A stretch of DNA of 64,000 bases from Entomortierella parvispora E1425 (lineage: Eukaryota > Fungi > Mortierellomycota): assembly GCA_020891255.1 (NCBI GenBank), contig BQFW01000004.1, forward strand, positions 1,488,001 through 1,552,000, in the 5' to 3' direction. Below, one piece after another: positions 31,309 to 46,000 of the stretch (position 1 is its first letter; each line of letters opens with the position of its first letter). The translations under genes and the position numbers were made by a program. A model generated the notes under the pieces. It searched no databases, had not been told where the DNA came from, and saw only the letters and a program-made list of their open reading frames with translations.

Positions 31309-31545
31309 ACCTTTTTTCTCTATTCGCAAACACACCCCCATCCTGATATACCTTCCTTCCCTTCACCCAGCATCTTGCATTACACACGTAATAGATATTC
31401 AACAAAAAAATAAAAAAAATACTTTTGATGAATGCGTTGGAGGATCTAACTTCCAGATCCACTCTGTCGCTCTTTGGGATCTGGGTACCAGGAGCCGTCG
31501 CCTGCACGCAAAAAAAAAAAAAAAAAAAAAAAGGAAAACAAAAAG

Positions 31546-31627
31546 TGCAAACTGTGGGATTTGAACCCACGTGCCAATAAAGGCAGAGGGCCTAAACCTC
31601 ACGGGATAACCACTACCCGAAGTTTGC
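31546..31627 (-). tRNA. tRNA-Leu: tRNA-Leu(UAG), intronless, long variable arm
   Basis: Minus strand GCAAACT TC GGGTAGTGGTTATCCC G TGAGG TTTAGGC CCTCT GCCTTTATTGGC AC GTGGG TTCAAAT CCCAC AGTTTGC A. Features: 7-bp acceptor stem, 3-bp D stem, anticodon TAG with G37, variable arm, TTC loop, A73, and downstream oligo-T. Confidence 0.93.
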
Positions 31628-32385: not shown

Positions 32386-34842
32386 ATGGCCGAGACACAA
32401 AACCAAAAGGACATGGCCCATGCCAGGACCAAGGTCAGCTTTAATGTCACAGACATGACCAACTATCTCCACGGCGGAGCCGCCAATGTAGAGCAGCGTC
32501 GCTACATTATCGACCTGATCGCACGCGAGCCTGTCTTCAACAAGGACGACTGGTATGTTGAGATCCTTCTTACACAAAATGCGAGCCGAGGCATCTCGGG
32601 TCTGTTTACATCGTCTCACACATCCTTTATTTATTGATCGGCTCTTACAGGGGTTGGTTGAACCACACTGATGCTGTCAAGCGTGGCATTGCCATGTCGA
32701 CCCGCCTGGCCGAGATCAAGATGGAGCACGACTTGAACGACCTTGACTTTGCCACCATGATGGAGGCCATCGACGATACCCTTCCCGTAAAGTGACCGCT
32801 CATTCTATCTTTTTTTGCTTTGTCATTCCTCTGGCGGGCCTCATTTTTTTTAACTGGATCTTCATTTTTTTTTTTTTTTTTTTTTTTTTTCATTTGCAGA
32901 TCGTTCTTCACAACGGTGCCTTCATTCCCGTGATCAACTCTCAGGGAACGGAGGAGCAGATTGACAAGTGGATTCCTCCTGCAGAGAAATACCAGATTCT
33001 TGGATGCTATGCCCAGACCGAGCTCGGTCATGGTTCCAACCTTTCAAAGCTTGAGACCACGGCCACCTTTATTCCTGAGACGGATGAGTGGGAGATCAAC
33101 AGCACGACTTTCACGGCATCAAAGTGGTGGATTGGTGGATTGGCTTGCCTATCAACACATTGCGTGCTTCAGGCGAGACTGTTTATCAAGGGTCATGACT
33201 ATGGTGCACACGTCTTTGTTGTCCCCTTGAGATCCTTGGATGATCATAAGCCCTTCCCTGGAGTCGAGCTGGGAGACATTGGTCCCAAGGCCTTCAACGG
33301 TTTCAACAAGATGGACAATGGCTGTAAGTAGACAATTCGTATCCGAGCTTGAGAAACGACAATGCGCAAACGAAAAGATGCTAAACGAAATCTCTTCTTG
33401 ATCCAATAGTCGCTCGCTTCAACAAGTACCGCATTCCTCGCGAGAACATGTTGATGCGCTTTTCTAAGGTGTCCAAGGAGGGTGTCTACACAAAGCCCCC
33501 CCACGCCAAGGTAAACATACGAATGCTACAAAGGGCATCGGATTTGACTTTTTCTTTGGTTATTGACAACGAGACATTTTTTTCTCGCTCTTCTCCAATG
33601 TAGCTCTCTTATGGTTCCATGGTTTTGTTGCGTTCTGTCCTCATCAAGCAGATGGCACTGTACCTCAGCCGTGCTACAACCATCGCTACCCGCTACTTGA
33701 CTGTCCGTCGTCAATTCAATAACCCCACATCACGTAACGATGCCGATCTGAACCCTGGTTTGGAAACCCAGGTCATCAACTACCCAATGGTCCAGAACAG
33801 ACTTTTCCCCATGATCGCCCAGTCTTACGCATTGTTTGCCGCCGGTTCCGAGATGATGAACAAATACATTTCATTGATGACAGATATGTCCTCTGGAAAC
33901 ATCGATGCCCTGGCTGAGGTCCATGCCATGTCTTCGGCTCTCAAGTCATACTGCACCACCATCGGTGCTGCTGGAACAGAGGAGTGCCGTAAACTGATGG
34001 GTGGTCATGGATTCTCGTACTTTACTGGTATTGCCCACCTCTTTGCCTCGATCGTGCCCTCCAACACTTACGAGGGAGACAACTATGTCTTGACTCAGCA
34101 AATGTCCCGCTATCTCTTGAAAGAGGTTAAAACCGCCAAGACTCAGCCCGAGAAGGTGACGCCTTACTCCAAGTACCTGTTGTTGGCCTTGAACAAGAGT
34201 GCTTTCGATCGTACGACCTGCGGAGTGGCCCATGCTGAGGATTGGCTTAAGCCCGAAGTCCAGCTTGCGGCGTTTGAGCACAGATGCGCGCGTTTGGCCT
34301 TTGAGCTGAGCGATGCAGTCGAAGCCGGTGGATTGGATCAGGCCAACCCCAAGACCTGGTCTGACCACAACATTGAGTGCTACCGTGTCTCGCACGCACA
34401 CGCTCAGTACACTATGGTCCTTTGGTTCATTCAGTCCATCCAGGCTGCTCAGGACCCCGCGTCGGAGGAGGAACGTCGTGCAGAGGGACCTTCGATCAAG
34501 GTTCTGGAGCGTCTTTCGCACTTGCATGCCCTGCACACCATGCAGACCAACTTGACCGACTTTGTTGAGGATGGTTACTTCTCCCCTGCTCAGTGTCAAT
34601 CCTTGAGAGCTCAGGTCAAGGCCTTGGTCGCGTCGCTGGCAGATGAGGCCATAGGTTTGGTCGATGCTTTTGATCACCCCGACTTCTTGCTGAACTCGGC
34701 TTTGGGTGCTGCTGACGGCAACGCTTACAAGCGTCTTTGGGACAAGGCCCAAACCGAGCCTCTGAACCAAAAACAGGTCTGCGATGGCTATGAAGAGTTC
34801 ATTCGACCTCTCCTCAAGAAGCATGGCGATGTCAAGCTTTAA
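32386..34842 (+). CDS. POX1: Peroxisomal acyl-CoA oxidase
   Basis: GCYAQTELGHGSN, SKWWIGG, GDIGPK..DNG, YLTVRRQF, CRKLMGGHGFS, TYEGDN, and LVDAFD..LNSALG..DGNAY. Ends in PTS1-like VKL. Confidence 0.96.
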
Positions 34843-35186
34843 ATATTCCCTATTTATGTCACTATTTAGAACAATCCTTTGCAATAGAAGTTTTTTTCCA
34901 TGAATGTTGCTGGAAAGATATTAATAGTTGTTTGTATCCAGGGCGCATTGGGTTCTCCCTTAATCTCCCAAGGTGAAGGCATTGGGAACCGTCGCTGGAA
35001 AAATTTGTCGAGCCGCTTCTTGAGAATTGGCCAAGCCTCCTCACGAATAGCGTATTCAGGGACAAGAAAGTGTATGGTCTCTACTGTAATAGTTTAGATG
35101 TCTTTATCCGATACTCGCTCTTCTCTTCGAAAACCTTCTCTTCAAAACACTTTACTCCTGCTCATTCCCTGCTGATTGACTTCATC

Positions 35187-36149
35187 ATGCCGAACAACGA
35201 AAGACCTGTAGGCAACAATGCCCGACAGGAAGCCTTAGTTTCTGGCCCTGGCACCACTAACTCCCCCCCCCCCCCCAAGCGCCGAGGAAGACCTCTGAAG
35301 GCTACCGTCGCGACCAGGACTTCAGCTGTGCTGTCCACAGAGTCGCTCGATCCTGTACCCACCGAGGAAACGATGACGGCCTCCACAGCTGACTTGTCTA
35401 CCTTGAGTGCACCCTCTTCCGAGGCAGTCCCCGCGACTCAGTCGGTTGATCCTGCATCGACACCTCCAGCAACGAGTGCAAATGCAACGCGTCTTCAACG
35501 CGTTCTTTCGAAACAAAGCAGCAGGAAACGTCTGATTTTCCGGATGCTGTGGAGAAAGAGACCGCAGCGGCAGTGGCGACTGGACGTGGGAAAAGAAGGC
35601 AGGAAGAAACCCAACCTTATGATGCTGTCTTAAACGAGAAACGCTCCAAGAAGCCGATCCTCACATTGACTAAACTGACTACAGGGCCTCCTTCAGCCAA
35701 CGGATGGAACAAGTCCCCGTTCTCTCCGTCTGCATTTGATGATCAAGCATCAATCTCACTTGCGGAAGAAGTTGTTCTTGCCAAAAGGAAGGAGTCTGCT
35801 CGAGTCGTCCTTGAAGGTATCCTCAACCGACCGCCTACAAAGACAATTCAAGCATACAAAACCTACTTCAAGCTGTGGAAGGTATGTATCCCCTATATAT
35901 CCAAATCCATGCTGGCTCCCATAGTGCATCTTTATAAGCATCTTGGCACTAAACTATTTTTGCATGACCATTTTGTAGACCTTTTGCGATATGAACTATG
36001 ATGGCGACAGCACTGTTTCATCCACCAGGATGCTCGAGTTCTTTGAGAAGGTCGTTTGGAGAGCCTGGACACTGCTGACTCGTACCCTTCCCTTACATCG
36101 AACGTTGAAGGTGGTTCCTTGTCTACGAGTCAAGCTAGTCTATGATTGA
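35187..36149 (+). pseudogene. Degenerate Crypton/Ndc10-like N-terminal fragment (AT-hook + RPxxTxxAY..W..FC motif), frameshifted and truncated
   Basis: AT-hook KRRGRP, then a frameshift near 35480-35510, then NRPPTKTIQAYKTYFKLWK | intron | TFCDMNYDGDSTVSSTRMLEFFEKVV. This resembles the N-terminal domain of fungal Crypton/Ndc10-like proteins. No catalytic recombinase domain follows. Confidence 0.55.
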
Positions 36150-37526
36150 ACCAGTCAAATCACAGGGCAACAGCATGGTCTGGTCGGGATCTATACACAT
36201 CTTCCGACTGTTAGGTCGATGCCATTCTAGGAGGAGAGCCCTCGTTACCTACAGTGGTAAACGAGCACTCATGTAGCTCTCACAATAAAAGGTTACAATA
36301 TCAGTGTGGCGATTGATCAATGAACGCTTGATACTCGAAACAAAAGACAGATCAGCCCTCAGCCGTGCTTCTTTCTTTGTGACCTCTGCGACCTCTATCC
36401 AGACTCCCATCCAGACCTCACCTATCCAGTCTCGATCTCTTACACGCACCTTGACAGCGCTGCTTTCTGCATCTTCCGAACAACTGCCCATAAACAACAT
36501 AGCCCTCGGCCTCATTTCCGGTACGGATTTTAGACATTTTAGACATGGTTTTGTTTATCTACTTGCACCTCAAGGAACGGCTTACCAACATGTTTTGATC
36601 TTCCTTTTTTATACCTTGTCGTCCGTCACCAACAGCGCAACAGACCTGTTCAGACCTGTTCTTTGCCTGTTGTCACCAAGCCAAAAAGGCGAATTCTGAG
36701 AGCTAGGCAAGAATAACGGACTAGTACAGCCCGCCCGAAAAGTTACTTTATAGTCTGTTGCAACTAACAACTGCTACCACTACTTGCATTTGTTGCCAAC
36801 TCACAGCCCAGGTTCTCAGCCACTGGCCCTTATAGCCAGCACCACACCAGAGCAGATCTGACCACCGCGAACGCAAGTTGTCATCTCGGGATAGAGAGAG
36901 TAAGCGAGCGGACTTCACCTTTTTTTTTCTTGCGCTTTGATTGATGTGATGGAGAGATGGAGAAAAGTACAATCAGAAACACTTGTGCAGCGTCTTGGAT
37001 GAGAATCATCCCTCTTGTAACATGTACCCCACCACGCCATCTCAATCCAACTTGATATTATCCCCTACCTGCCGAGGAAACAATCTTTCTCGTAACGGCC
37101 TCAAAAAAACCATCTCACCAAAGGATATTCCTGTCGGTCTCCGGACGAGCACACAATCAATTCATTTTTCCCTCTCCTGCACAAGGACACATACATACAT
37201 ACAACTTTTCGTTCACCCTTTAAACTTCATCCGCCCACACTTCCACTTTATGGAAAGCCTCCTCAGTACCTTTCCTTCTCTTCGCAGAACCGGATATTAA
37301 TACCACGCACTCTTCCACTATTCAGTTGCTAGACAACAACGTCGCCTCACTGCAGATTTCCCTTTCTGCCATTCACGTCATCTCCAGTTGCTGCTTCCCA
37401 TTGACGACAATACGCTCACAGTATACGCCTTTCGGTAAGGAGACAACGTGAAGCTTCCAGAATCTGCGAAAAAGTTATATAGGATGGCCATCTGATCCAG
37501 TCTTCAACACTTGCAGGTAAAAAATC

Positions 37527-40500
37527 ATGGGTTGTAACAAGCTCTTCGTCACAATTCATAAAAATGGATTGTCAAACGTCTCGGCAACTAGTCAACAAGT
37601 TCGAGAAGCTGGGTTCAGTTTGTTCCAGTACGATGTCCTTGCTATGCACCTCAGGACAATTATTCGGCATGCCATTGACGCCAGGCACTTTCGAAATGGT
37701 TCGCTCGACCTTGACGAGTCGATGCTCGCCGCGGCAAGGGAGATAAAGCGGGATATTGACCTTACGCTTACCGATCTCCTCGTAACCTCCGATAAAACCA
37801 CTCAAGGCACTTCCATGCAACCTTCTACTGCTTTTGGGCTCTCGAGTCTTGCTCACGGATCGATCTCCCTGTACGACCGGCTCCTCTTACACATTGACGG
37901 TGGGCCAAGTCTTGCAAAAGGCATTGAACACCAGAAAAGACTCAAAAAGAGAGAAGAGGCTGCAAGCAAGTTGGACTCGTGCATCCGAGCATTTAACATT
38001 AAGAGGGGCCGATCCCGCAGAGTCCCAAAAAAGCTACTCGACCGCATGCAAAAGGAAATGACCAAGGCGTTCCAACTTACAATCCATCATAAGGAAGCAC
38101 TTCACAGGGCTTTCAAGGCGGTCGGTCTCCGGTCACACATCTGCCACGGCGAAGCCGACCCATGTTTGGCCAAAGCATGCTTGGACCATGCATCCAATGC
38201 ACGAGGATCTTCGCAACCCTCGGGCTCTTCTGATTCATCAAGTCTTTCAGTCCCTTCTCAAGGAAAGATGGCTGTGATTACAAAGGATTCTGACCTCCTT
38301 GTGTATGAATCCATCGAGGGAGTTCTACGTCCAAATCCAAAGGGCGCTGGATACATCCTTTACGAAAAAACAGAGGTGCTCAAAGTCCTCAAACTTTTGC
38401 ATCCCTTGTTCCTGGTGCTGTATGGCATTTCTCTGAGAAATGACTACTCTTACAATGTCAGGTCAATCGGTCCTGTCGGTAGCCTAGAGCTCGTTCATCA
38501 AGTTCAAGACAAGTACCTGCCAGCTCCAGCGGCTCAAGCTGCTCCACGCCCTTCCTCAGCATCAAGAAAGGGGAAGAATCTTGTACAGCCGCCGTTTCCT
38601 TCCTCGGCAGCATCGAGTTCTCTCGGATCAGCTCAGCGTAAAGGCAAGTCTGTCGTAGCGCCTGTGTTTGCTCCTTCTCCTACCCCTACTCCTACAACTA
38701 CACGAGGGAAGCATGCTCGAGGACTCGGCCCCGAGGATGAAGGTCCGGCAGTAAAAAAACGAATCGGCAGCGACCCAAGCGCCGATGCTGCGTCGGCCGC
38801 AGGTCAGAGCTCGATAATCTCGGTCAACCCACAGCAGTCTCAACCATCGCCAGAAGAGCTCAAAAGCATCAGAGACCTCGTCGCGTGTTGGTGCGAAAAG
38901 GCATCTGCCAAAATCAAGAAGAATGTCTATGCTACTCGTTTCGAGAACACCATCCAGACCTTTGGATTCTACAGTCAGCTGGTTGTTGGTGAGGATCCTC
39001 TGGTAAACTTTTGGTACGTTTACCAATTCGAGCCACCTCTCCAGCCCCCATTGGCGGCTTGGCCCGAGGACGAAGAGGTTGCACCAGAGAAGACGGACAA
39101 GATTGACCCGGATACTCTCTCGGCTCGTGCGCTTGTCCTTCTCGAACAATATGCCAAAGTCCGAAACCATCTCAATGAACAAGCAGAGCGGTCTCCTTCT
39201 CCTGGCACGTAAGTGATCCACTTGATACCCAACCCTGATACTCTCTATTGAGAAGATGCATTCAGACCCTAACATCCTCTTTTTTTTCTTCCGTGGTTAC
39301 CTTAGTATCAAGTCCTACAATCACACTCGCTATCACAATCTCCTTCCAGGTCAAATCCAGGCAAACGGCGATGTGATCGATATAATTAACCGCAGGCCTC
39401 CCTACAACCAATTCTCCCACCACTATATCAAGAAGGACGGGTTCCTTCAAGGCCGATCCATCAACGATATTACTGCTGTCAAACCAAAGTCTGTATCTAT
39501 TACTGCGACAGTCTCGGGTTCTACAAGTACGGCCCAAGCCCATTCATCCAGTGGTGCTGCGGCCAGTAGCGGCGGCAGCAGTTCAAAGTCCAAGCGGAAT
39601 ACCAAGAAGAAGAAAAAGGGCAACAAGCACCGCAAAAAGGGCAACAAGCGGCGCAAAAAGGACCCCACGGACTATAAGGAAAAGGCCCCGGCGGGTACTG
39701 GTCCCAAGCCTTCGAGCGCCACCATAAGGGCCAGAAAGTCGGCACAAGAGTACGAGATGAGAACCCTCACAGTTGGCAGCTTGGCCAAGAATATTTGCTC
39801 CTGTCTTATGGCCAATCGAGATATGGACAAATACCCTTTCAAGTCCCCCGAGTTCTTTAGTTTTTTCCGCGAGCAGAGGACGCTTGCAGAGAAGGTTGCC
39901 AAGAGAATTCAAGTGTGCGTGGAAACAGCACAAATGTACCAAGAGACTTTATACGCCATCATTATGCTTGCGATTGACGACGTCAAAGACCCATCACGCC
40001 TGAAGCAGCAGTCCCAAGAGGCACGAAGAATCGAGGTTGGGTCCTCTCGTTACCGTGAGCGATTACCCTGGGAGCTGCCAGAGACGTACGATAACTCTTT
40101 TATTGCCTCGCTTCTCGATCAAAAGGTTATATACGGGCTCTCCTCCCTGATCTTTTATGGTAAAAACCGGGCAACAGAGGCTGCTATCGAGGCAAAAGAT
40201 GCACACCAGAATACATCCACTCGCAACGCTTCAACCAGAAAAATGGATTACTCCAAGAACTATGGGACGTGGATTTTTGAACGGTATCGGCAAGAGACTG
40301 GATTTATTCCGTTTGCTGAAAGAGACATTCACATCTTACACGCCGAGGCGACCCGTTCTGCGGCATCTGATGTGCTTGAGGCCATCGACACGCACTACAA
40401 GTATGCCTTGGTAGGTCACCCTTCTCCATGTACCGAAATCTAGTATACATGGCTTTGATTCTGCCGGCTGATTGCTTTTTTATGTTGAACCACTCTAATG

Positions 40501-42499
40501 AACATAGTTCAAAGACGAAGCAAAGAAGGACATTAAATGGGACAAAAAAGACGGTCAACCAGCCATATCATGGTTCCAGGCTCACAACACAGGACAATTC
40601 GCAGACTTCGTCTCACCAAAAGTCATGGCTAGATTTGTCGGCGTCACCGAGAAGGATCTTTTTCTGTTTTTATCACCTCCTCCGAAAAGCATTTTCGCGA
40701 AAGAAAAGGACCAATTCGATGAAGTCTCCGCTACCGAAGACCATGCTGGACCTTCATCCTCATGCGGCATGGAAGGAGCGGCTGGCATATCAACCACAGT
40801 TGAAGACCATGCTGGAACGTCATCCCCAAGGAGCACGGAGGGTACGGCTACCACAGTGACCAATGTCGACTTTGTATTGTCATCCCAGTCAACCGCCAAA
40901 GTTGAGTTTGCGGCATCTTCTGGCAATGACAATCAGGAGGTCTTGAGCAACGTTTTGGACAAAATATTCACACCAACTGGCAAGACAAAGCAAAAGGCGC
41001 GATCCGATTATATTTTGAGCAAGAAGGGTTGGTTCATCACTCAGCTTCTATATGACCGAGGCAAGACCGACTCGAACAAGGAGCTTAGGCGCAACGAAAA
41101 GGGATTCAGACGTAATGATGGATATGGCCGTAAAGTCCGCCTTGGCAGCGAAAAAAAATCTCATGACAGACCCTTGGAGCTTCGGACAGAGTTCAAGACC
41201 AATGGCCTGGTCTTACAGCTTGTTGCCACGGACTCTAGGTACCCTAAAAAGGCGAAGTCAAAATATCGATACCATGACGACGAAGAGGAGGAGGAGGACA
41301 TTCTGGAGCAGGAGGACCACGTAGAAGAGATCAGCGATGAGGACCAAAAGATCGTCAATAGGATCATTCGGGAAGATGCACAGTACGCCAGAGATCCTCA
41401 TATTATCCAAGGTCATTACAAGCATAAACATGCTGGAAGGTCAGAGGTGACGGACAAGGACGTGAAGTATCGAAAGGAAAACGATATTGTCTTTACACAG
41501 TCAGGATACGAATGCGACCTGTCCGCTCGGTCGGAGCTGTTGGCCAACGCCAGCCAACTGACGTTCCCCACATCGCTAAAGAAGGTTATCGGGATCGATC
41601 TCGGAGAGATTGTCACGGCGGCGGCGTGTCTTCTCGACAAGGACAATCCAAACTCCCGATACGCCAAAACGATAAAGAGGTCATACCTCTATGAGCCGTC
41701 CTGGAGATTCACACGACTTCTACGCTCCACAAAGGCAGCAAATTTTATTGACATTCTGGAATCCAAAACTCCGTCCAGGAAACACGGGGGTGTGCTCGAT
41801 TATTTCAACTACCAGGGAAGGTCAGCCCAGGAAGTCCTGCAAGAGCATTTTGCGAGTGATGCAAAAGCACTTGAAGCAATCTCCAGGCCAGAGAAGGAGA
41901 ACGTCTTGGAAGGTTCTGTCAGAGAAGTACTGTTCAGATTCTATCATTCCAAGTGGATGTTGAAGAAGAGTTGGGACGCCCGAAAAGCATCAACTCAGGC
42001 ACTCGATATCGCAGTCAATGCTATCATCAGTCTTGCGGGGATCAACAACGAGTCGGAAGCCCAAGTCATTTTCGCAATCGGTTTAGCAGTGTTCCGCAGC
42101 GGGTTCGGGCCCTCGTCTAAACACCTAATACTCTTGAAAAAACTGGTGAAAAAGGTAAGGTCTCTTTTCATGTTTACTAGTTGAACTTCCAGAAATAAGG
42201 TCACTTGTACTTATTGCAGCCTCGAACGATTTTAGATTCGAGAAGCTGGGCACATTGCTGTAGGTGTGCACGAGTACTACACGAGTAGCAAGTGCCCACG
42301 AGAGAACTGCAATCTATTTCTCAAAGATAAGGGGAATCGGAGCAAGTTCTGCTCAGGCTGCAATGTGTACTTTGACCGCGACCAAGTCGGGTCTGAGAAC
42401 ATTGCCAGGGTGTGCGTGGCCTTCCTAAACGGACTTGAGCGACCAGCAAAATACAAGCCCGCGCCGCCCGCACCAGCACCAGCAGCCTCCTCTTCATGA
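37527..42499 (+). CDS. XPG/FEN1-type PIN nuclease fused to Fanzor (TnpB-like RuvC + Zn finger), 4 exons, 1,565 aa
   Basis: Exons 37527-39208, 39306-40410, 40508-42154, 42236-42499 total 4,698 nt, in frame with GT-AG introns. N-terminal motifs: MGC..L, YDV, HIDGGPSLAK..KR, GEAD, KDSDLLV, NDY..N..IG. C-terminal motifs: TNGLVLQL, VIGIDLG, VIFAIG, VHEYYTS, CPRENC..CSGC, FDRDQVGSENIA. Confidence 0.87.
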
Positions 42500-43005
42500 G
42501 CGCCACCAAAAAACTTTCGGGGCCTGGCAAGCCCAACACAATTTGTAAGTCACCAATGCGTTTTTATTATTGGTTGCCATTCAAATATTCAAAACCAGTC
42601 ATTAATCTCTGCCCTTTTTTCAGACAAATTCACTCCAGATACTGTAGTTGGCGAGATAGTCCAGGTCGATCCATGTTTCGAACCGGTATAAGGAATCAGA
42701 AATTGGACACCGATGGGTGTCAAGAGGGTCCTATGGAGCCGTGGTCCAAGGATTATCAAGAAGGGTCTTGTGCGCATGTAGGATTATATAGAGAATACCC
42801 CCAAGGATTTAAGAAAGAAAAAAACAACAACAGGGCGTAGGCTGAAGCCCTTTGCCCCTTCACGCCTTCCGCATCAGTGTAGCACTCGTGTGGTGCATTG
42901 GCAACTTAGGACATGTCTTTTGCATTCTCAAGACGCGACCAGACTCTGGCAATTGTGCCTCCCCTTTGTCAATGACACATTGTGAGCGTTGCATTCCACA
43001 ATGGT
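42500..43005 (+). ncRNA. Candidate omega-RNA (Fanzor guide scaffold) region, unverified
   Basis: Lies immediately 3' of the Fanzor-like ORF. Short hairpins: GGGC/GCCC 42520-42534, GACACC-gatg-GGTGTC 42706-42721, AGGGC/GCCCT 42832-42851, CATTGTG/CACAATG 42978-43003. The call rests mainly on position. Confidence 0.3.
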
Positions 43006-43006
43006 T

Positions 43007-46000
43007 CTATTTATTGACTGTTCCCGCTCTTTTTCGAGTCTTGAATACTCCTAAGGGAGAGAATGGACTGGACCCGGAAGACAAGGGTGCTGCCGATCCA
43101 GAAAGAGGTCGCGATGGACTAGTGTTGGTATGTTCCTCCTTTGACACTATTTCTTGCGGCAATGGTGACAGTGGTGGCGGCGGCAAGCTTTGCTGTTGCT
43201 GTTTGAGCTCCCTTTCCTGCTTTTCTTTCTCCTTTTCTTTTTCTTGAGCTGCAGCTTTGGAGTCCATAGACTCTGCCGTGACCGCAATCAGCTTTTGAAC
43301 AGAGTGTCTCCTGAGCTTGATCATCAATGCAGTCTCCAGTAGCGGCTTCGGTCCCAGGATATCCAGAGGGATGTGCAAGATGTACGCCAACAATTCTGAG
43401 CTGGTTGGACACTTGTTCAACAAGTGATCCCGACACAGCTGCAAAATGGCCAATCCAACTCTGAAGAGTGCTTTGCAACCATCAAAGTAAAAAATGTCCC
43501 AGACGCGCAAGACGGACGCCCATGGCAGACTCATGGTAAAGAGAGTCATAAACCATTGAGTCATGTACATCAGAGGGATCACGTCATTCTTTTGCAAGTG
43601 GTCCGCAAGCACAGGGTCCTGATCCTTGAGGAGTCGTTCAAAAACCTGGGCATCGATCCGTAGTTGTCGCAGTGTGGGCGTGTAGTAATCCTGCATGTAG
43701 CCCTCAATCGTCGCCACCAGCAGCCAAAATGCATCCTCGACCGGCATTTGCATCAACATCATTCCGACCAATCGTCCCATGCCCTGGCAGTACCCAACAC
43801 TTGGCTTGTAATGAGCGTACGCCTTCAGGACTGCATGCAAGTCCTGCTGACCGGTTCCGCCCATCCCGTCCCGAAAGTGAACATGATCCGGGTAGCACCG
43901 ATGGATGTCTCTTTCAATCACCTCGTGGATTGGCAAAGCCTCGCGCTTTTGCAATTCTTCAAAGAGTCCAGGTTGTCTGTAAAAATCAGCCTTGGCCAAG
44001 AACAGCCACACTCGACCTCGCACAGATGTTGGTACGCCTCTCCTGATTAGTTTCTTGTACTATAGGTTCATTAAAAGGTTCAGACATGTGGGACCGTTAG
44101 AACCCAAAGCATGAGGTATTGGTTACAAAATTAAACGTCAATAATTCTAGACAAATACAATGGGTCTTACTTTGGTTGAGCGTCTCACGTTATCTGCGTT
44201 CAGTCGAGTGGCGGCATGGATCCATTTGAGCTCATTTTCACGATTGAGCTTTTGTTTTCTTATCACCTTCTTTCGGTCCTGGTCCGAAGCGGTCGACACG
44301 TTTGAGCCAAGTCCATCAATGCCAACAGAAGAGCCGTTGCCAGTGAGATCCTGTCCCTGGTTCATTTCATCATCCAGGTCATAAATGAAGCCGTAGTCGT
44401 TCACGAAAAGTCTTGAGCCTGCGCCATTGTTGGAGCCGATATCATCCTCGTCCCCGCCGTCCTCATCATGATCATCATGATAGTCTGTTTCTGCGCCATC
44501 AAAGTCGTCTCCGTCCTCTCCATTCTCATCCAGCGTTGGCACAAAATATCGTCCCGGGGCAATTCCACCTTCAATTCCATGACCAAGTATATGGGGGTTC
44601 CTGGTATCCTCAACTGAATGAGCAGAGCTTCTCCTTGGAAGCCCAAACCAATTCTTGGATCGATGCTTCTGAGGGTTTGAGCTCTCTGACGACGTTGACA
44701 TGACTTGCGAGATCGAGGACATTGTCTGCTGAGACTGATAGTGTTGCTGGCCCTGAGGCAATCCTGGCCAAGATTTCGTGGTAATAAAACTACTTATGGT
44801 ATGTGCCGTCGCCTCACTGGTCCTGCGTTGTCGTTGTGGTCGCACTGTCCGCTCCCCTGGCTCTGCGGCCCTTGGGGGTACTTTATCCAAGGACTCGTTC
44901 AATTTCTGTCGCATATTCGAGTCAGAGTGCAGTGCAGGTCCAGAGTTGGATCTTTGTCTTTGTTCAGATTTCACCCAAGGTCGAAGTCGATCGAACCTGG
45001 ACATGATGGGCGATGATGATGTTGGTCCTGGTGAGATAGGTCTGCTCTGTTCCATCGACAGAGGGACTTCAATCTTTGGTCCATTTTCTTTCACGGATCG
45101 ACTACGCGGTCTCCCGAAGATTCCATGCTTGGACTTTGGCTTTTCTTTATCCGTGTTGCTTTCTGTGGTCGAAAGAGCAAAGCTCACTCCAGTCGCCGAG
45201 GATCTTGCTAGAGACAAATTGTCAATATCGTTTTTCATGACAGCCTCCGACGAAGCTCGTGGGCGACTTGGAACTTTGGTGACAGAGGTCTGTGTGACAG
45301 AGTTTTGCACGACAGGGGCCTGGGTGGTAGGTGTTTGAGCGACCTCTGGAGACATCTGCACCACTGTCAGATCGACTTCCTTTGATCCATGGTCCGCATA
45401 CAGTCCAGCGTTTGGTGCCATAGTAAAGCCAGCCTTTTGGAGGACGTGATGTGTTTTCGACCGAATGTCTTCCAAGACCGAGTGCAAGTAATGATCATGT
45501 TCGTGATGATTTCGTTGATCCTGCTCGTGCTCTTGCTGCAGTTGTGCTCCAGGGTCCTCAAGAGACTGGCGCCTGCTATATCGTGCTTGATTTTTGGCGG
45601 GAATAGGCGTGACTGGTCTGCTCGATGGTGTAGCCTCATTCCTGATGACGCCAGTGCCCTCATGACTTTGCTGAAACGGTACAGGAGAGCTTGCTCTTGA
45701 GGAAACCGAGTTGTTGGAGGAGGAAGGTGTGGATCGCTGAGGTCGTGGAGCAGTGTCCAGGCGGTCCTGTGTAGTAGGGTCCGTTGAGCGATGTGATAAA
45801 GAATTAGTGGTGGGGATCGATAATGAGCCGCTATTTTGATCCCGAAAAGAGGTTATAGACGACATTGAGGACTTTGTTCCTATTGAGACGCCTGCAGTCG
45901 ATAGGCGAGGTTGGGTATCCTGAGAACCTTTAGTCGAAGATTGCCGTGACGATGATCGGGGTGGGATCACTGGCGCGGTTGAGTGCTGGGGCGCTGGTGG

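Follow-up and report, generated by a model that had tools for sequence, protein, structure and literature searches.

Does a fungal gene of Entomortierella parvispora encode one protein in which a FEN/XPG-type 5' nuclease is joined to a Fanzor, or have two neighbouring genes been read as one, and, if the fusion is real, what would the two nucleases do together? The question is raised by a 64,000-nucleotide (nt) stretch of the genome of strain E1425 (Mortierellomycota; assembly GCA_020891255.1, contig BQFW01000004.1, positions 1,488,001 to 1,552,000, forward strand). In this stretch, hereafter the window, there is one copy of the gene, on the plus strand at window positions 37527 to 42499. An earlier note, made from the letters alone, had proposed that the gene encodes an RNA-guided dual nuclease. 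We find that the fusion is a real single spliced protein and not an artefact of the gene model, and that, judged by sequence comparison, the gene is a member of a large, old and conserved family and not a one-off. The reading that we prefer, with a probability of roughly 60%, is that in this conserved FEN-Fanzor family an RNA-guided cut is followed in cis by 5' flap cleavage or resection, which would favour homology-directed copying.

Joining four plus-strand open reading frame (ORF) segments gives a 4,698-nt coding sequence for 1,565 amino acids (aa) with a single terminal stop, and the four exons and three phase-matched GT-AG introns of the earlier note proved exact in every coordinate. Coding exon 1 (37527-39208; aa 1-560 plus 2 nt), defined by its ORF and splice donor, contains the FEN/XPG-type nuclease domain, followed by a linker rich in Ser, Pro and Ala and then by a conserved helical stretch. 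Intron 1 (39209-39305; 97 nt, phase 2, GTAAGT...CCTTAG) is the crucial one, as it ties the FEN-type exon to the Fanzor part and thus to all the rest. Coding exon 2 (39306-40410; aa 561-929), which is collinear with the related loci L001, L004 and L005, encodes a linker with a K/R-rich stretch resembling a nuclear localization signal (NLS) and then the N-terminal Fanzor body, whose fold was not recognized in our searches. Intron 2 (40411-40507; 97 nt, phase 0, GTAGGT...ACATAG) leads to coding exon 3 (40508-42154; aa 930-1478), with the Fanzor body and its acidic low-complexity inserts, RuvC-I and the canonical RuvC-II position. Intron 3 (42155-42235; 81 nt, phase 0, GTAAGG...TTTTAG) precedes coding exon 4 (42236-42499; aa 1479-1565 plus the stop), which carries the relocated glutamate E1491, a C4 zinc finger and RuvC-III.

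Public contigs aligned to 37301-43200 bear on how this gene is spliced. They include low-depth contigs of run X2, which shares its sample with the assembly run X1 and whose kind is only guessed ('DNA?'). One X2 contig of 206 nt joins 39208 exactly to 39306, matches the window perfectly over 100 letters to the left and right of the joint, and skips the 97 nt between them that begin with GT and end with AG. A second X2 contig ends at 37326, and its 99 loose letters map to 36870-36899, which places a joint in the 5' untranslated region (UTR). The upstream noncoding exon matched by X2 is at 36801-36899 on the plus strand (36801 is not a defined start), and the 5' UTR intron covers 426 nt at 36900-37325 (GTAAGC..CAG, with the GT at 36900 and the AG at 37324-37325). 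A three-codon upstream ORF with its ATG at 37484 lies ahead of the main ATG at 37527. The remaining X2 contigs on the fusion gene are confined to exons. Since the two exact GT-AG excisions are absent from the assembly run, either X2 holds complementary DNA or DNA copies of spliced RNA exist, and in both cases an RNA must have lost intron 1. The earlier note had assumed a single transcript; this stands for the junction of exons 1 and 2, given an X2 run of guessed kind, and the aligned contigs contain no RNA contig that spans intron 2 or intron 3.

Comparison with relatives supports the same gene model. L002, a metagenomic contig 87% identical to the window and aligned to 35101-39471, has in exon 1 two indels that keep the frame and a 2-nt deletion that does not, and in intron 1 indels of 1 and 4 nt, the latter of which would destroy an alternative ORF starting from the ATG at 39256. 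Against L002, the ratio of nonsynonymous to synonymous substitution rates (dN/dS) in the proposed frame is 0.26 over aa 1-333 and 0.32 over aa 378-560, compared with about 1.5 in the two wrong frames; the fusion gene is under purifying selection. Among relatives at 48 to 58% protein identity, uninterrupted ORFs stop at the same donor sites, and those of P0004 to P0006 all end just beyond the donor of intron 3. L005, with 55% aa identity, is collinear over four exons and has its introns, including intron 2, at the same three places. Two other relatives are free of introns. L054 is one ORF of 1,289 aa with a Pfam XPG_I match near its N terminus (28.9 bits; cut-off, 24.9) and a Cas12f1-like TNB match near its C terminus (27.7 bits; cut-off, 26.3), and L003/P0154 is one ORF of 1,131 aa that matches both the N-terminal profile and the Fanzor C terminus.

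Residues 1 to 340 (37527-38546, plus strand), where the earlier note had seen a PIN/XPG domain, are by profile and predicted fold a true nuclease of the FEN1/EXO1/Rad2-XPG superfamily. A profile search of 1.8 billion representative proteins led to 412 relatives and a 49-sequence family alignment, A5. When A5 was compared with the PDB, all 35 matches were FEN-superfamily enzymes, and these included Rad2 (E 1.3e-16, full-length, positions 1-262), FEN1 (E 6e-13), EXO1 (E 4e-11), XPG (E about 1e-11) and GEN1 (E 1e-6). The AlphaFold2 model built on the 49-sequence alignment reached a predicted local distance difference test (pLDDT) score of 88.4 and a predicted TM-score of 0.86; an earlier model from a four-sequence alignment was poor (pLDDT 43.6) and was set aside. 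A Foldseek search of the model against the PDB returned FEN1, EXO1, Rad2/XPG or T5 exonuclease for all of the best 50 matches, with FEN1 (3q8k) at the top (E 3.5e-8, TM-score 0.59 over 335 columns), so the FEN1/EXO1 fold that the earlier note had thought such a search should recover was indeed found. Taken alone, the window protein remains below the Pfam gathering threshold (XPG_I_2, PF12813, E 0.09-0.16, 12 to 13 bits against a cut-off of 24.2), and its superfamily membership therefore rests on profile and fold. Relatives do exceed Pfam cut-offs, as with P0108 (XPG_I_2, 29.2 bits) and L054. More generally, single-sequence searches of exons 1 to 3 in Pfam, NCBIfam and the PDB gave nothing significant for the N-terminal domain or the RuvC body, and family profiles were needed to identify both.

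The active site of this domain is complete in its residues. Seven metal-binding carboxylates are present (D36, D124, E209, D211, D254, D256 and D306), together with K131 and R138. Based on HMMER alignments and the established active-site numbering of human FEN1, D36 is equivalent to FEN1 D34, D124 to D86, K131 to K93, R138 to R100, E209 and D211 to E158 and E160, D254 and D256 to D179 and D181, and D306 to D233. Across the 49 relatives of A5, the catalytic residues show little or no variation. In an independently collected set of fusions, with only about 20 to 25% identity in this domain, the carboxylates, K131 and R138 are kept in 19 of 19 sequences (D36 in 15 of the 15 that cover it). The long helices above the active site are retained in the model (residues 129-161 and 168-181) and an NDY...IGP motif resembling a helix-three-turn-helix (H3TH) is conserved; an extra helix and a disordered insert are predicted at aa 62-118. 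By sequence the domain is orthologous to no single named enzyme among FEN1, EXO1, Rad2/XPG and GEN1. The language-model Atlas places it among XPG_N/XPG_I clusters. Its nearest Atlas clusters come from giant viruses, and a viral or other-eukaryote branch of the fusion family is possible.

Between the two nucleases lies a linker of about 350 to 400 mostly disordered residues, and the K-rich, NLS-like stretch that the earlier note had placed in it is found at aa 654-679 (39583-39660, plus strand). The C-terminal half, which the same note had assigned to Fanzor, is by profiles and motifs a Fanzor/TnpB RuvC domain plus C4 zinc finger with the rearranged active site of the Fanzor type. Exon 4 matches the Cas12f1-like TNB family of Pfam (PF07282, 32.7 bits against a cut-off of 26.3) and the guided_TnpB family of NCBIfam (E 8e-6). 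A profile of the family's C termini, A4, to whose members the window C terminus is tied by phmmer (E 1e-55 to 1e-16), finds in the PDB the mimivirus Fanzor2 ApmFz2 (9b0l, E 3.9e-6) and SpuFz1 (8gkh, E 3.1e-5), the latter over about 160 positions (profile 57-218) between RuvC-I and the zinc finger; after the Fanzors come TnpB and Cas12f structures. In the Atlas, the RuvC stretch of the window sits among TnpB/RuvC clusters.

The individual motifs agree with this assignment. RuvC-I (IGIDLGE) provides D1293 (41597-41599, plus strand, exon 3), the canonical RuvC-II position is occupied by the Gly in FAIGLAVF (exon 3), and the relocated RuvC-II glutamate, E1491 (42272-42274, plus strand, exon 4), lies 37 residues past that Gly. 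The zinc finger cysteines C1498, C1503, C1517 and C1520 (42293-42361) and the RuvC-III residues R1526-D1527 (42377-42382) follow on the plus strand in exon 4. Bao and Jurka defined a Fanzor signature, D-X(125,275)-[TS]-[TS]-X-X-[C4 zinc finger]-X(5,50)-RD (PMC3627910), and the window protein has it in full: D1293, 200 residues, T1494-S1495-S-K, the four cysteines, 5 residues, and R1526-D1527. E1491 aligns with E467 of ApmFz2, the relocated glutamate that is essential by mutation (PMC10530073), and E1491, R1526 and D1527 are each kept in 19 of 19 fusions. A separate observation in the acidic, Ser-rich insert of the Fanzor body is a tandem 66-nt duplication in exon 3 (40736-40867; 71% identical), which encodes a repeated 'EDHAG-SS...EG' low-complexity unit.

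The fusion has relatives in many places. In Mortierellaceae, for which the earlier note had suggested a census, annotated but uncharacterized two-domain proteins occur in five genera, Entomortierella, Mortierella, Linnemannia, Benniella and Gryganskiella. In E. parvispora itself, both domains are found in GJJ73912.1 (1,363 aa, hypothetical) and GJJ76480.1 ('putative transposase'). They are also found in KAF9949650.1 and KAF9950829.1 of Mortierella alpina (of which KAF9950829.1 is a 'PIN domain-like protein' in UniRef), in several proteins of Linnemannia gamsii, and in Benniella sp., M. claussenii and Mortierella sp. GBA35; KAF9284158.1 of M. alpina has a weaker C-terminal match (E 1.2e-5). A word-indexed protein search gave three matches per exon, as it was restricted by its length window. 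A degenerate-pattern scan of the Joint Genome Institute (JGI) metagenomes, based on the alignment of the C termini, yielded 49 loci; exact exon 4 peptides had no match in the JGI metagenome scan. At all 15 metagenomic loci with at least 3.5 kb of upstream sequence, a FEN-type domain lies on the same strand about 3.3 to 3.9 kb before the zinc finger.

Pairwise divergences of the N- and C-terminal domains correlate (Spearman 0.79 over 171 pairs, which are not independent), and since the two distances covary, the data fit one old fusion whose domains have diverged together. The G+C content is 38 to 41% in L003, L054 and L047 and 48 to 52% in the Mortierellaceae-like loci; the three probably come from hosts other than Mortierellaceae, and the family then probably reaches beyond that group. 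Two very long proteins, P0160 (3,300 aa, M. alpina CAO3574369.1) and P0161 (2,367 aa, Mortierella sp. GBAus27b), fall into the same 90%-identity clusters as FEN-domain matches and are probably merged gene models around FEN-Fanzor elements.

The region just past the stop codon is of interest for the guide RNA. Most of the fusion gene is single-copy by assembly depth, but within 42254-42646 the assembly graph breaks and depth climbs from 147 to as much as 320. A further contig of X1 and one of X3 (another sample with the same organism label) follow the window to 42646/42648 and then diverge, so the shared unit ends 147 to 149 nt past the stop codon. By analogy, 42646-42648 is where the right end and omega-RNA scaffold of a Fanzor or TnpB element would be expected. 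We therefore delimit a 3' tail common to other copies at 42500-42648 (plus strand), a candidate omega-RNA region and right end, from contig divergence, depth and a conserved hairpin. In the window and in L005, L001/L006, L007, L015 and L009, a GC-rich hairpin, a CAA(T/C)TT motif and the splice donor GTAAGT occur within 40 to 170 nt past the stop (tail of the window, 42500-42648; motifs at L005 3537-3582, L001 2753-2798, L007 395-440, L015 941-986 and L009 4234-4279). The window hairpin is at about 42519-42534 and its CAATTT|GTAAGT at 42539-42550. The hairpin varies in sequence and keeps its pairing (GGGGC/GCCCC, GGGUG/CGCCC, GGGC/GCCC and GAGUGU/ACGCUC), variants of the second motif include CAAGTT, and L001/L006 have three extra bases ahead of the donor. 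A branch-site-like CTRAY and a YAG occur 70 to 150 nt beyond the donor. In the window, this would define a putative 3' UTR intron at 42545-42623 (plus strand), which leaves a terminal piece of 23 to 25 nt that ends at the homology boundary; no RNA contig in the aligned runs spans it. RNAalifold on six sequences gives a consensus stem of only 4 bp, with two pairs changed on both sides. For omega-RNA biogenesis, the hairpin and donor amount to a lead and not yet to a finding.

How the two nucleases might cooperate can be considered from two identified domains with full catalytic sets in a single polypeptide, a spliced junction, purifying selection and a conserved family. FEN1 and EXO1 remove 5' flaps and resect DNA in the 5'-to-3' direction, and a retention or homing role has been proposed for TnpB. 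Fanzor and TnpB proteins are omega-RNA-guided nucleases that make double-strand cuts dependent on a target-adjacent motif (TAM) (PMC10432273, PMC10530073). What the fusion protein does, be it guided cutting, flap processing, resection, homing or defence, we infer by analogy with these enzymes. The C-terminal Fanzor half would bind an omega-RNA from the 3' end of the element, somewhere in about 42450-42648, with the adjoining flank serving as guide, and the RuvC domain would cut DNA beside a TAM. The tethered FEN/EXO1-like domain would then work in cis on the break, where it may strip the 5' flap or displaced strand, resect the 5' ends, or do both. Precise end-joining would be disfavoured, and repair would go to homology-directed copying from the element-bearing locus, resulting in retention or homing. 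The logic of cutting and then resecting is credible because engineered fusions of T5 exonuclease with CRISPR and OMEGA effectors raise editing efficiency (PMC13434818). A bolder version, which we put forward only tentatively, is a natural 'cut-and-resect' nuclease that makes each guided break recombinogenic and so acts as a homing drive through homology-directed repair (HDR), with a guide that may come from the spliced 3' UTR.

Several observations weigh against the preferred reading of a guided cut followed by processing in cis. Comparison of the copies identified no omega-RNA in the 3' tail, and no omega-RNA structure is claimed for it. The region of about aa 700-1280, which presumably represents WED and REC domains with acidic inserts, was not recognized in Pfam, PDB, Atlas or profile searches; these included an Atlas search with exon 2 and a comparison of the exon 3 profile A3 with the PDB, and neither exon 2 nor the initial half of exon 3 gave an informative match. 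Because the FEN superfamily includes RNA nucleases, its assignment does not prove a DNA substrate. Splicing is documented for intron 1 and the 5' UTR intron, in low-depth contigs of a run of guessed kind. At about position 3970 of L002 (window 38658), the 2-nt deletion shifts the frame within the exon 1 linker. The dN/dS past this point nonetheless remains at 0.32; the gene of L002 was broken very recently or its assembly is in error. Finally, no terminal inverted repeats (TIRs) were found between the flanks or across 22 kb, where only matches at chance level or of poly-A/T appeared, and this copy has neither an adjoining transposase nor a detectable target-site duplication. With TIRs and a neighbouring transposase lacking, this copy may no longer move.

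Four other explanations deserve consideration, and one of them concerns the gene itself. An XPG-like gene of 561 aa that ends in intron 1 and a separate Fanzor could have been joined by a chance GT-AG pair, as the unspliced reading does stop directly past the donor (TAA at 39210-39212) and an ATG at 39256 opens the frame of exon 2. The exactly spliced X2 contig across intron 1, the 4-nt indel of L002 that falls after this ATG, the intron-free single-ORF fusions in relatives and the collinearity of 15 of 15 loci speak against such a merger, which we reject as having next to no probability. It is also conceivable that the window copy, domesticated or immobile, serves the host in DNA repair, recombination or genome defence and is not part of an active mobile element. 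The copy has only an acyl-CoA oxidase gene on one side and a RabGAP gene on the other, is mostly single-copy by depth, lacks TIRs and a transposase, and is expressed and under purifying selection; yet the sequence that L002 shares upstream stops before the oxidase gene, the 3' tail is common to other copies and has a sharp end, and Fanzor1 elements devoid of TIRs are known in Mucor (PMC3627910). We consider a host-gene origin improbable.

The two remaining explanations accept a guided nuclease and assign another task to the FEN-like domain. It may act within the R-loop, where it would trim the displaced nontarget strand or a 5' flap made by RuvC, so that both active sites share one double-strand break or yield a gap or deletion instead of resected ends. 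FEN1, XPG and GEN1 cleave flaps and bubbles at junctions of single- and double-stranded DNA, two features typical of flap-threading enzymes, long helices over the active site and the K131/R138 pair, are present in the model, and Fanzor RuvC sites with a relocated glutamate lack collateral cleavage of single-stranded DNA (PMC10530073). Nevertheless, the RuvC triad is fully conserved, characterized Fanzors make double-strand breaks alone, and the long, mostly disordered linker favours a loose tether over an integrated active site, which makes a role inside the R-loop rather unlikely in our view. Alternatively, the domain may act on RNA, either in maturation or trimming of the omega-RNA (its release from the mRNA 3' UTR or an intron) or in decay of target transcripts. 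The PIN-like/FEN superfamily has 5'-3' exoribonucleases, members of the family match XRN_N weakly, and the hairpin and splice donor in the 3' tail are both conserved, so that guide biogenesis may be unusual. As every one of the nearest matches, by profile or by fold, is a DNA enzyme and the H3TH-like, double-stranded-DNA-binding motif is conserved, we see very little chance that RNA is the substrate. Guided cutting with processing of the break in cis stays the reading that we favour.

The surroundings of the gene provide further observations. Its neighbours are an acyl-CoA oxidase gene on the plus strand that ends at 34842 and a RabGAP-TBC gene on the minus strand that ends at 43007. Homology with L002, which shares 2.4 kb upstream of the gene, starts near 35075-35100; this start may be the left boundary of the element, although it is not sharp. 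A 21-nt inverted pair at 35007/42924 was considered as TIRs and rejected, as it is 81% complementary and blastn gives no support. Copies may have differing 5' parts, as is suggested by a 4.6-kb X3 contig (record 16) that matches the window at about 90% from 37683 on and is unrelated before; this divergence point falls inside the coding region of the FEN domain. A comparable situation has been described for the MCi-2 elements of Mucor, Fanzor1 elements that lack TIRs and vary in their 5' parts, while a long coding portion toward the 3' end is conserved (PMC3627910).

Head-to-head upstream of the FEN-Fanzor gene, three related loci carry an ORF of 171 aa with a SWIM zinc finger (Pfam, 21 to 22 bits; cut-off, 19.6) on the minus strand, at L023 438-950, L037 619-1131 and L026 437-949, which is compatible with a Mutator-type partner gene; no Mutator or SWIM remnants were found upstream in the window. 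The window has an upstream ORF at 35070-36001 (plus strand) of low complexity, in which an RRGRP motif resembles an AT-hook and the C terminus contains the segment 'KTIQAYKTYFKLW'. In L002 (433-1257), the only one of the related loci to have it, this is a single ORF of 274 aa, whereas in the window two overlapping frames share it; Pfam gives no match. The 'KTIQAYKTYFKLW' segment may be reminiscent of core-binding regions of tyrosine recombinases or Cryptons. Farther away, poly-A/poly-T tracts of 23 to 26 nt at 31502-31547 and 32860-32899 form an inverted pair 1.3 kb apart, which is probably simple low-complexity sequence.

Fanzors are eukaryotic RNA-guided nucleases that are being engineered as compact editors, and their natural role, as well as the steering of repair after the cut, is a current question. 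The invariance of both active sites over a deep divergence implies that end processing matters to what these elements do, and the fusion offers a test of the idea of homing by HDR through separation-of-function mutants. Through it the FEN/XPG superfamily gains a new and probably transposon-borne branch, with relevance to transposon biology and genome editing. If the bolder version holds, a guide from a spliced 3' UTR, with its hairpin, GTAAGT donor and short terminal exon, would mean that omega-RNA can be made by a new route, and a homing drive based on HDR would protect the element from loss through end-joining in its eukaryotic host.

Fanzors, FEN-type enzymes and the hypothetical proteins in the databases are already known; what is new is a Fanzor with a built-in FEN-type nuclease. 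The earlier note was aware of no characterized XPG/FEN1-Fanzor fusion, and our literature search likewise found no description of a natural fusion of Fanzor or TnpB with a FEN-type enzyme in full-text literature, a scope that leaves out most subscription papers and supplementary tables. A census of the PIN superfamily mentions no TnpB, RuvC or transposase partner (PMC5499597), and Bao and Jurka described the N-terminal halves of Fanzors as 'highly variable' (PMC3627910). Large Fanzor censuses may contain fusion sequences without comment.

Compared with known systems, the window protein resembles Fanzor1, as represented by SpuFz1 of Spizellomyces punctatus (8GKH) and by elements of Mucoromycota, in its TnpB-derived RuvC, the Gly at RuvC-II, the relocated glutamate, the [TS][TS]xxC4...RD motif, the introns, the NLS-like segment, the fungal host and the multicopy status. 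Fanzor1 elements of Mucoromycota are of the MuDr type or TIR-less and have long coding regions (PMC3627910). Unlike SpuFz1, the window protein is about 2.5 times longer and has a complete FEN/XPG-type N terminus that, judged by its residues, is catalytically intact; unlike Fanzor1, its 3' tail has a conserved hairpin and splice donor. With FEN1, EXO1, Rad2-XPG and GEN1 (XPG_N, XPG_I, XPG_I_2) it shares the fold, the seven carboxylates, the equivalents of K93 and R100, the H3TH-like motif and an N terminus that begins with MG. It differs from them in that identity is only 12 to 16%, with Rad2 the best match by profile and FEN1 the best by fold, and in having the insert at aa 62-118 and the fusion to an RNA-guided nuclease; no PCNA-interaction tail was seen. 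The closest parallel in design is with the engineered fusions of T5 exonuclease to Cas12, TnpB or Fanzor, made to raise editing or deletion efficiency, of which the window protein may be the natural counterpart. In these too, a FEN-superfamily 5' nuclease is tethered to a RuvC RNA-guided nuclease (PMC13434818), and T5 exonuclease is itself among the Foldseek matches of the window domain. The engineered proteins are man-made with a phage enzyme, whereas the fusion in E. parvispora is natural, old and under selection, its FEN domain is of the eukaryotic type, and its linker is very long.

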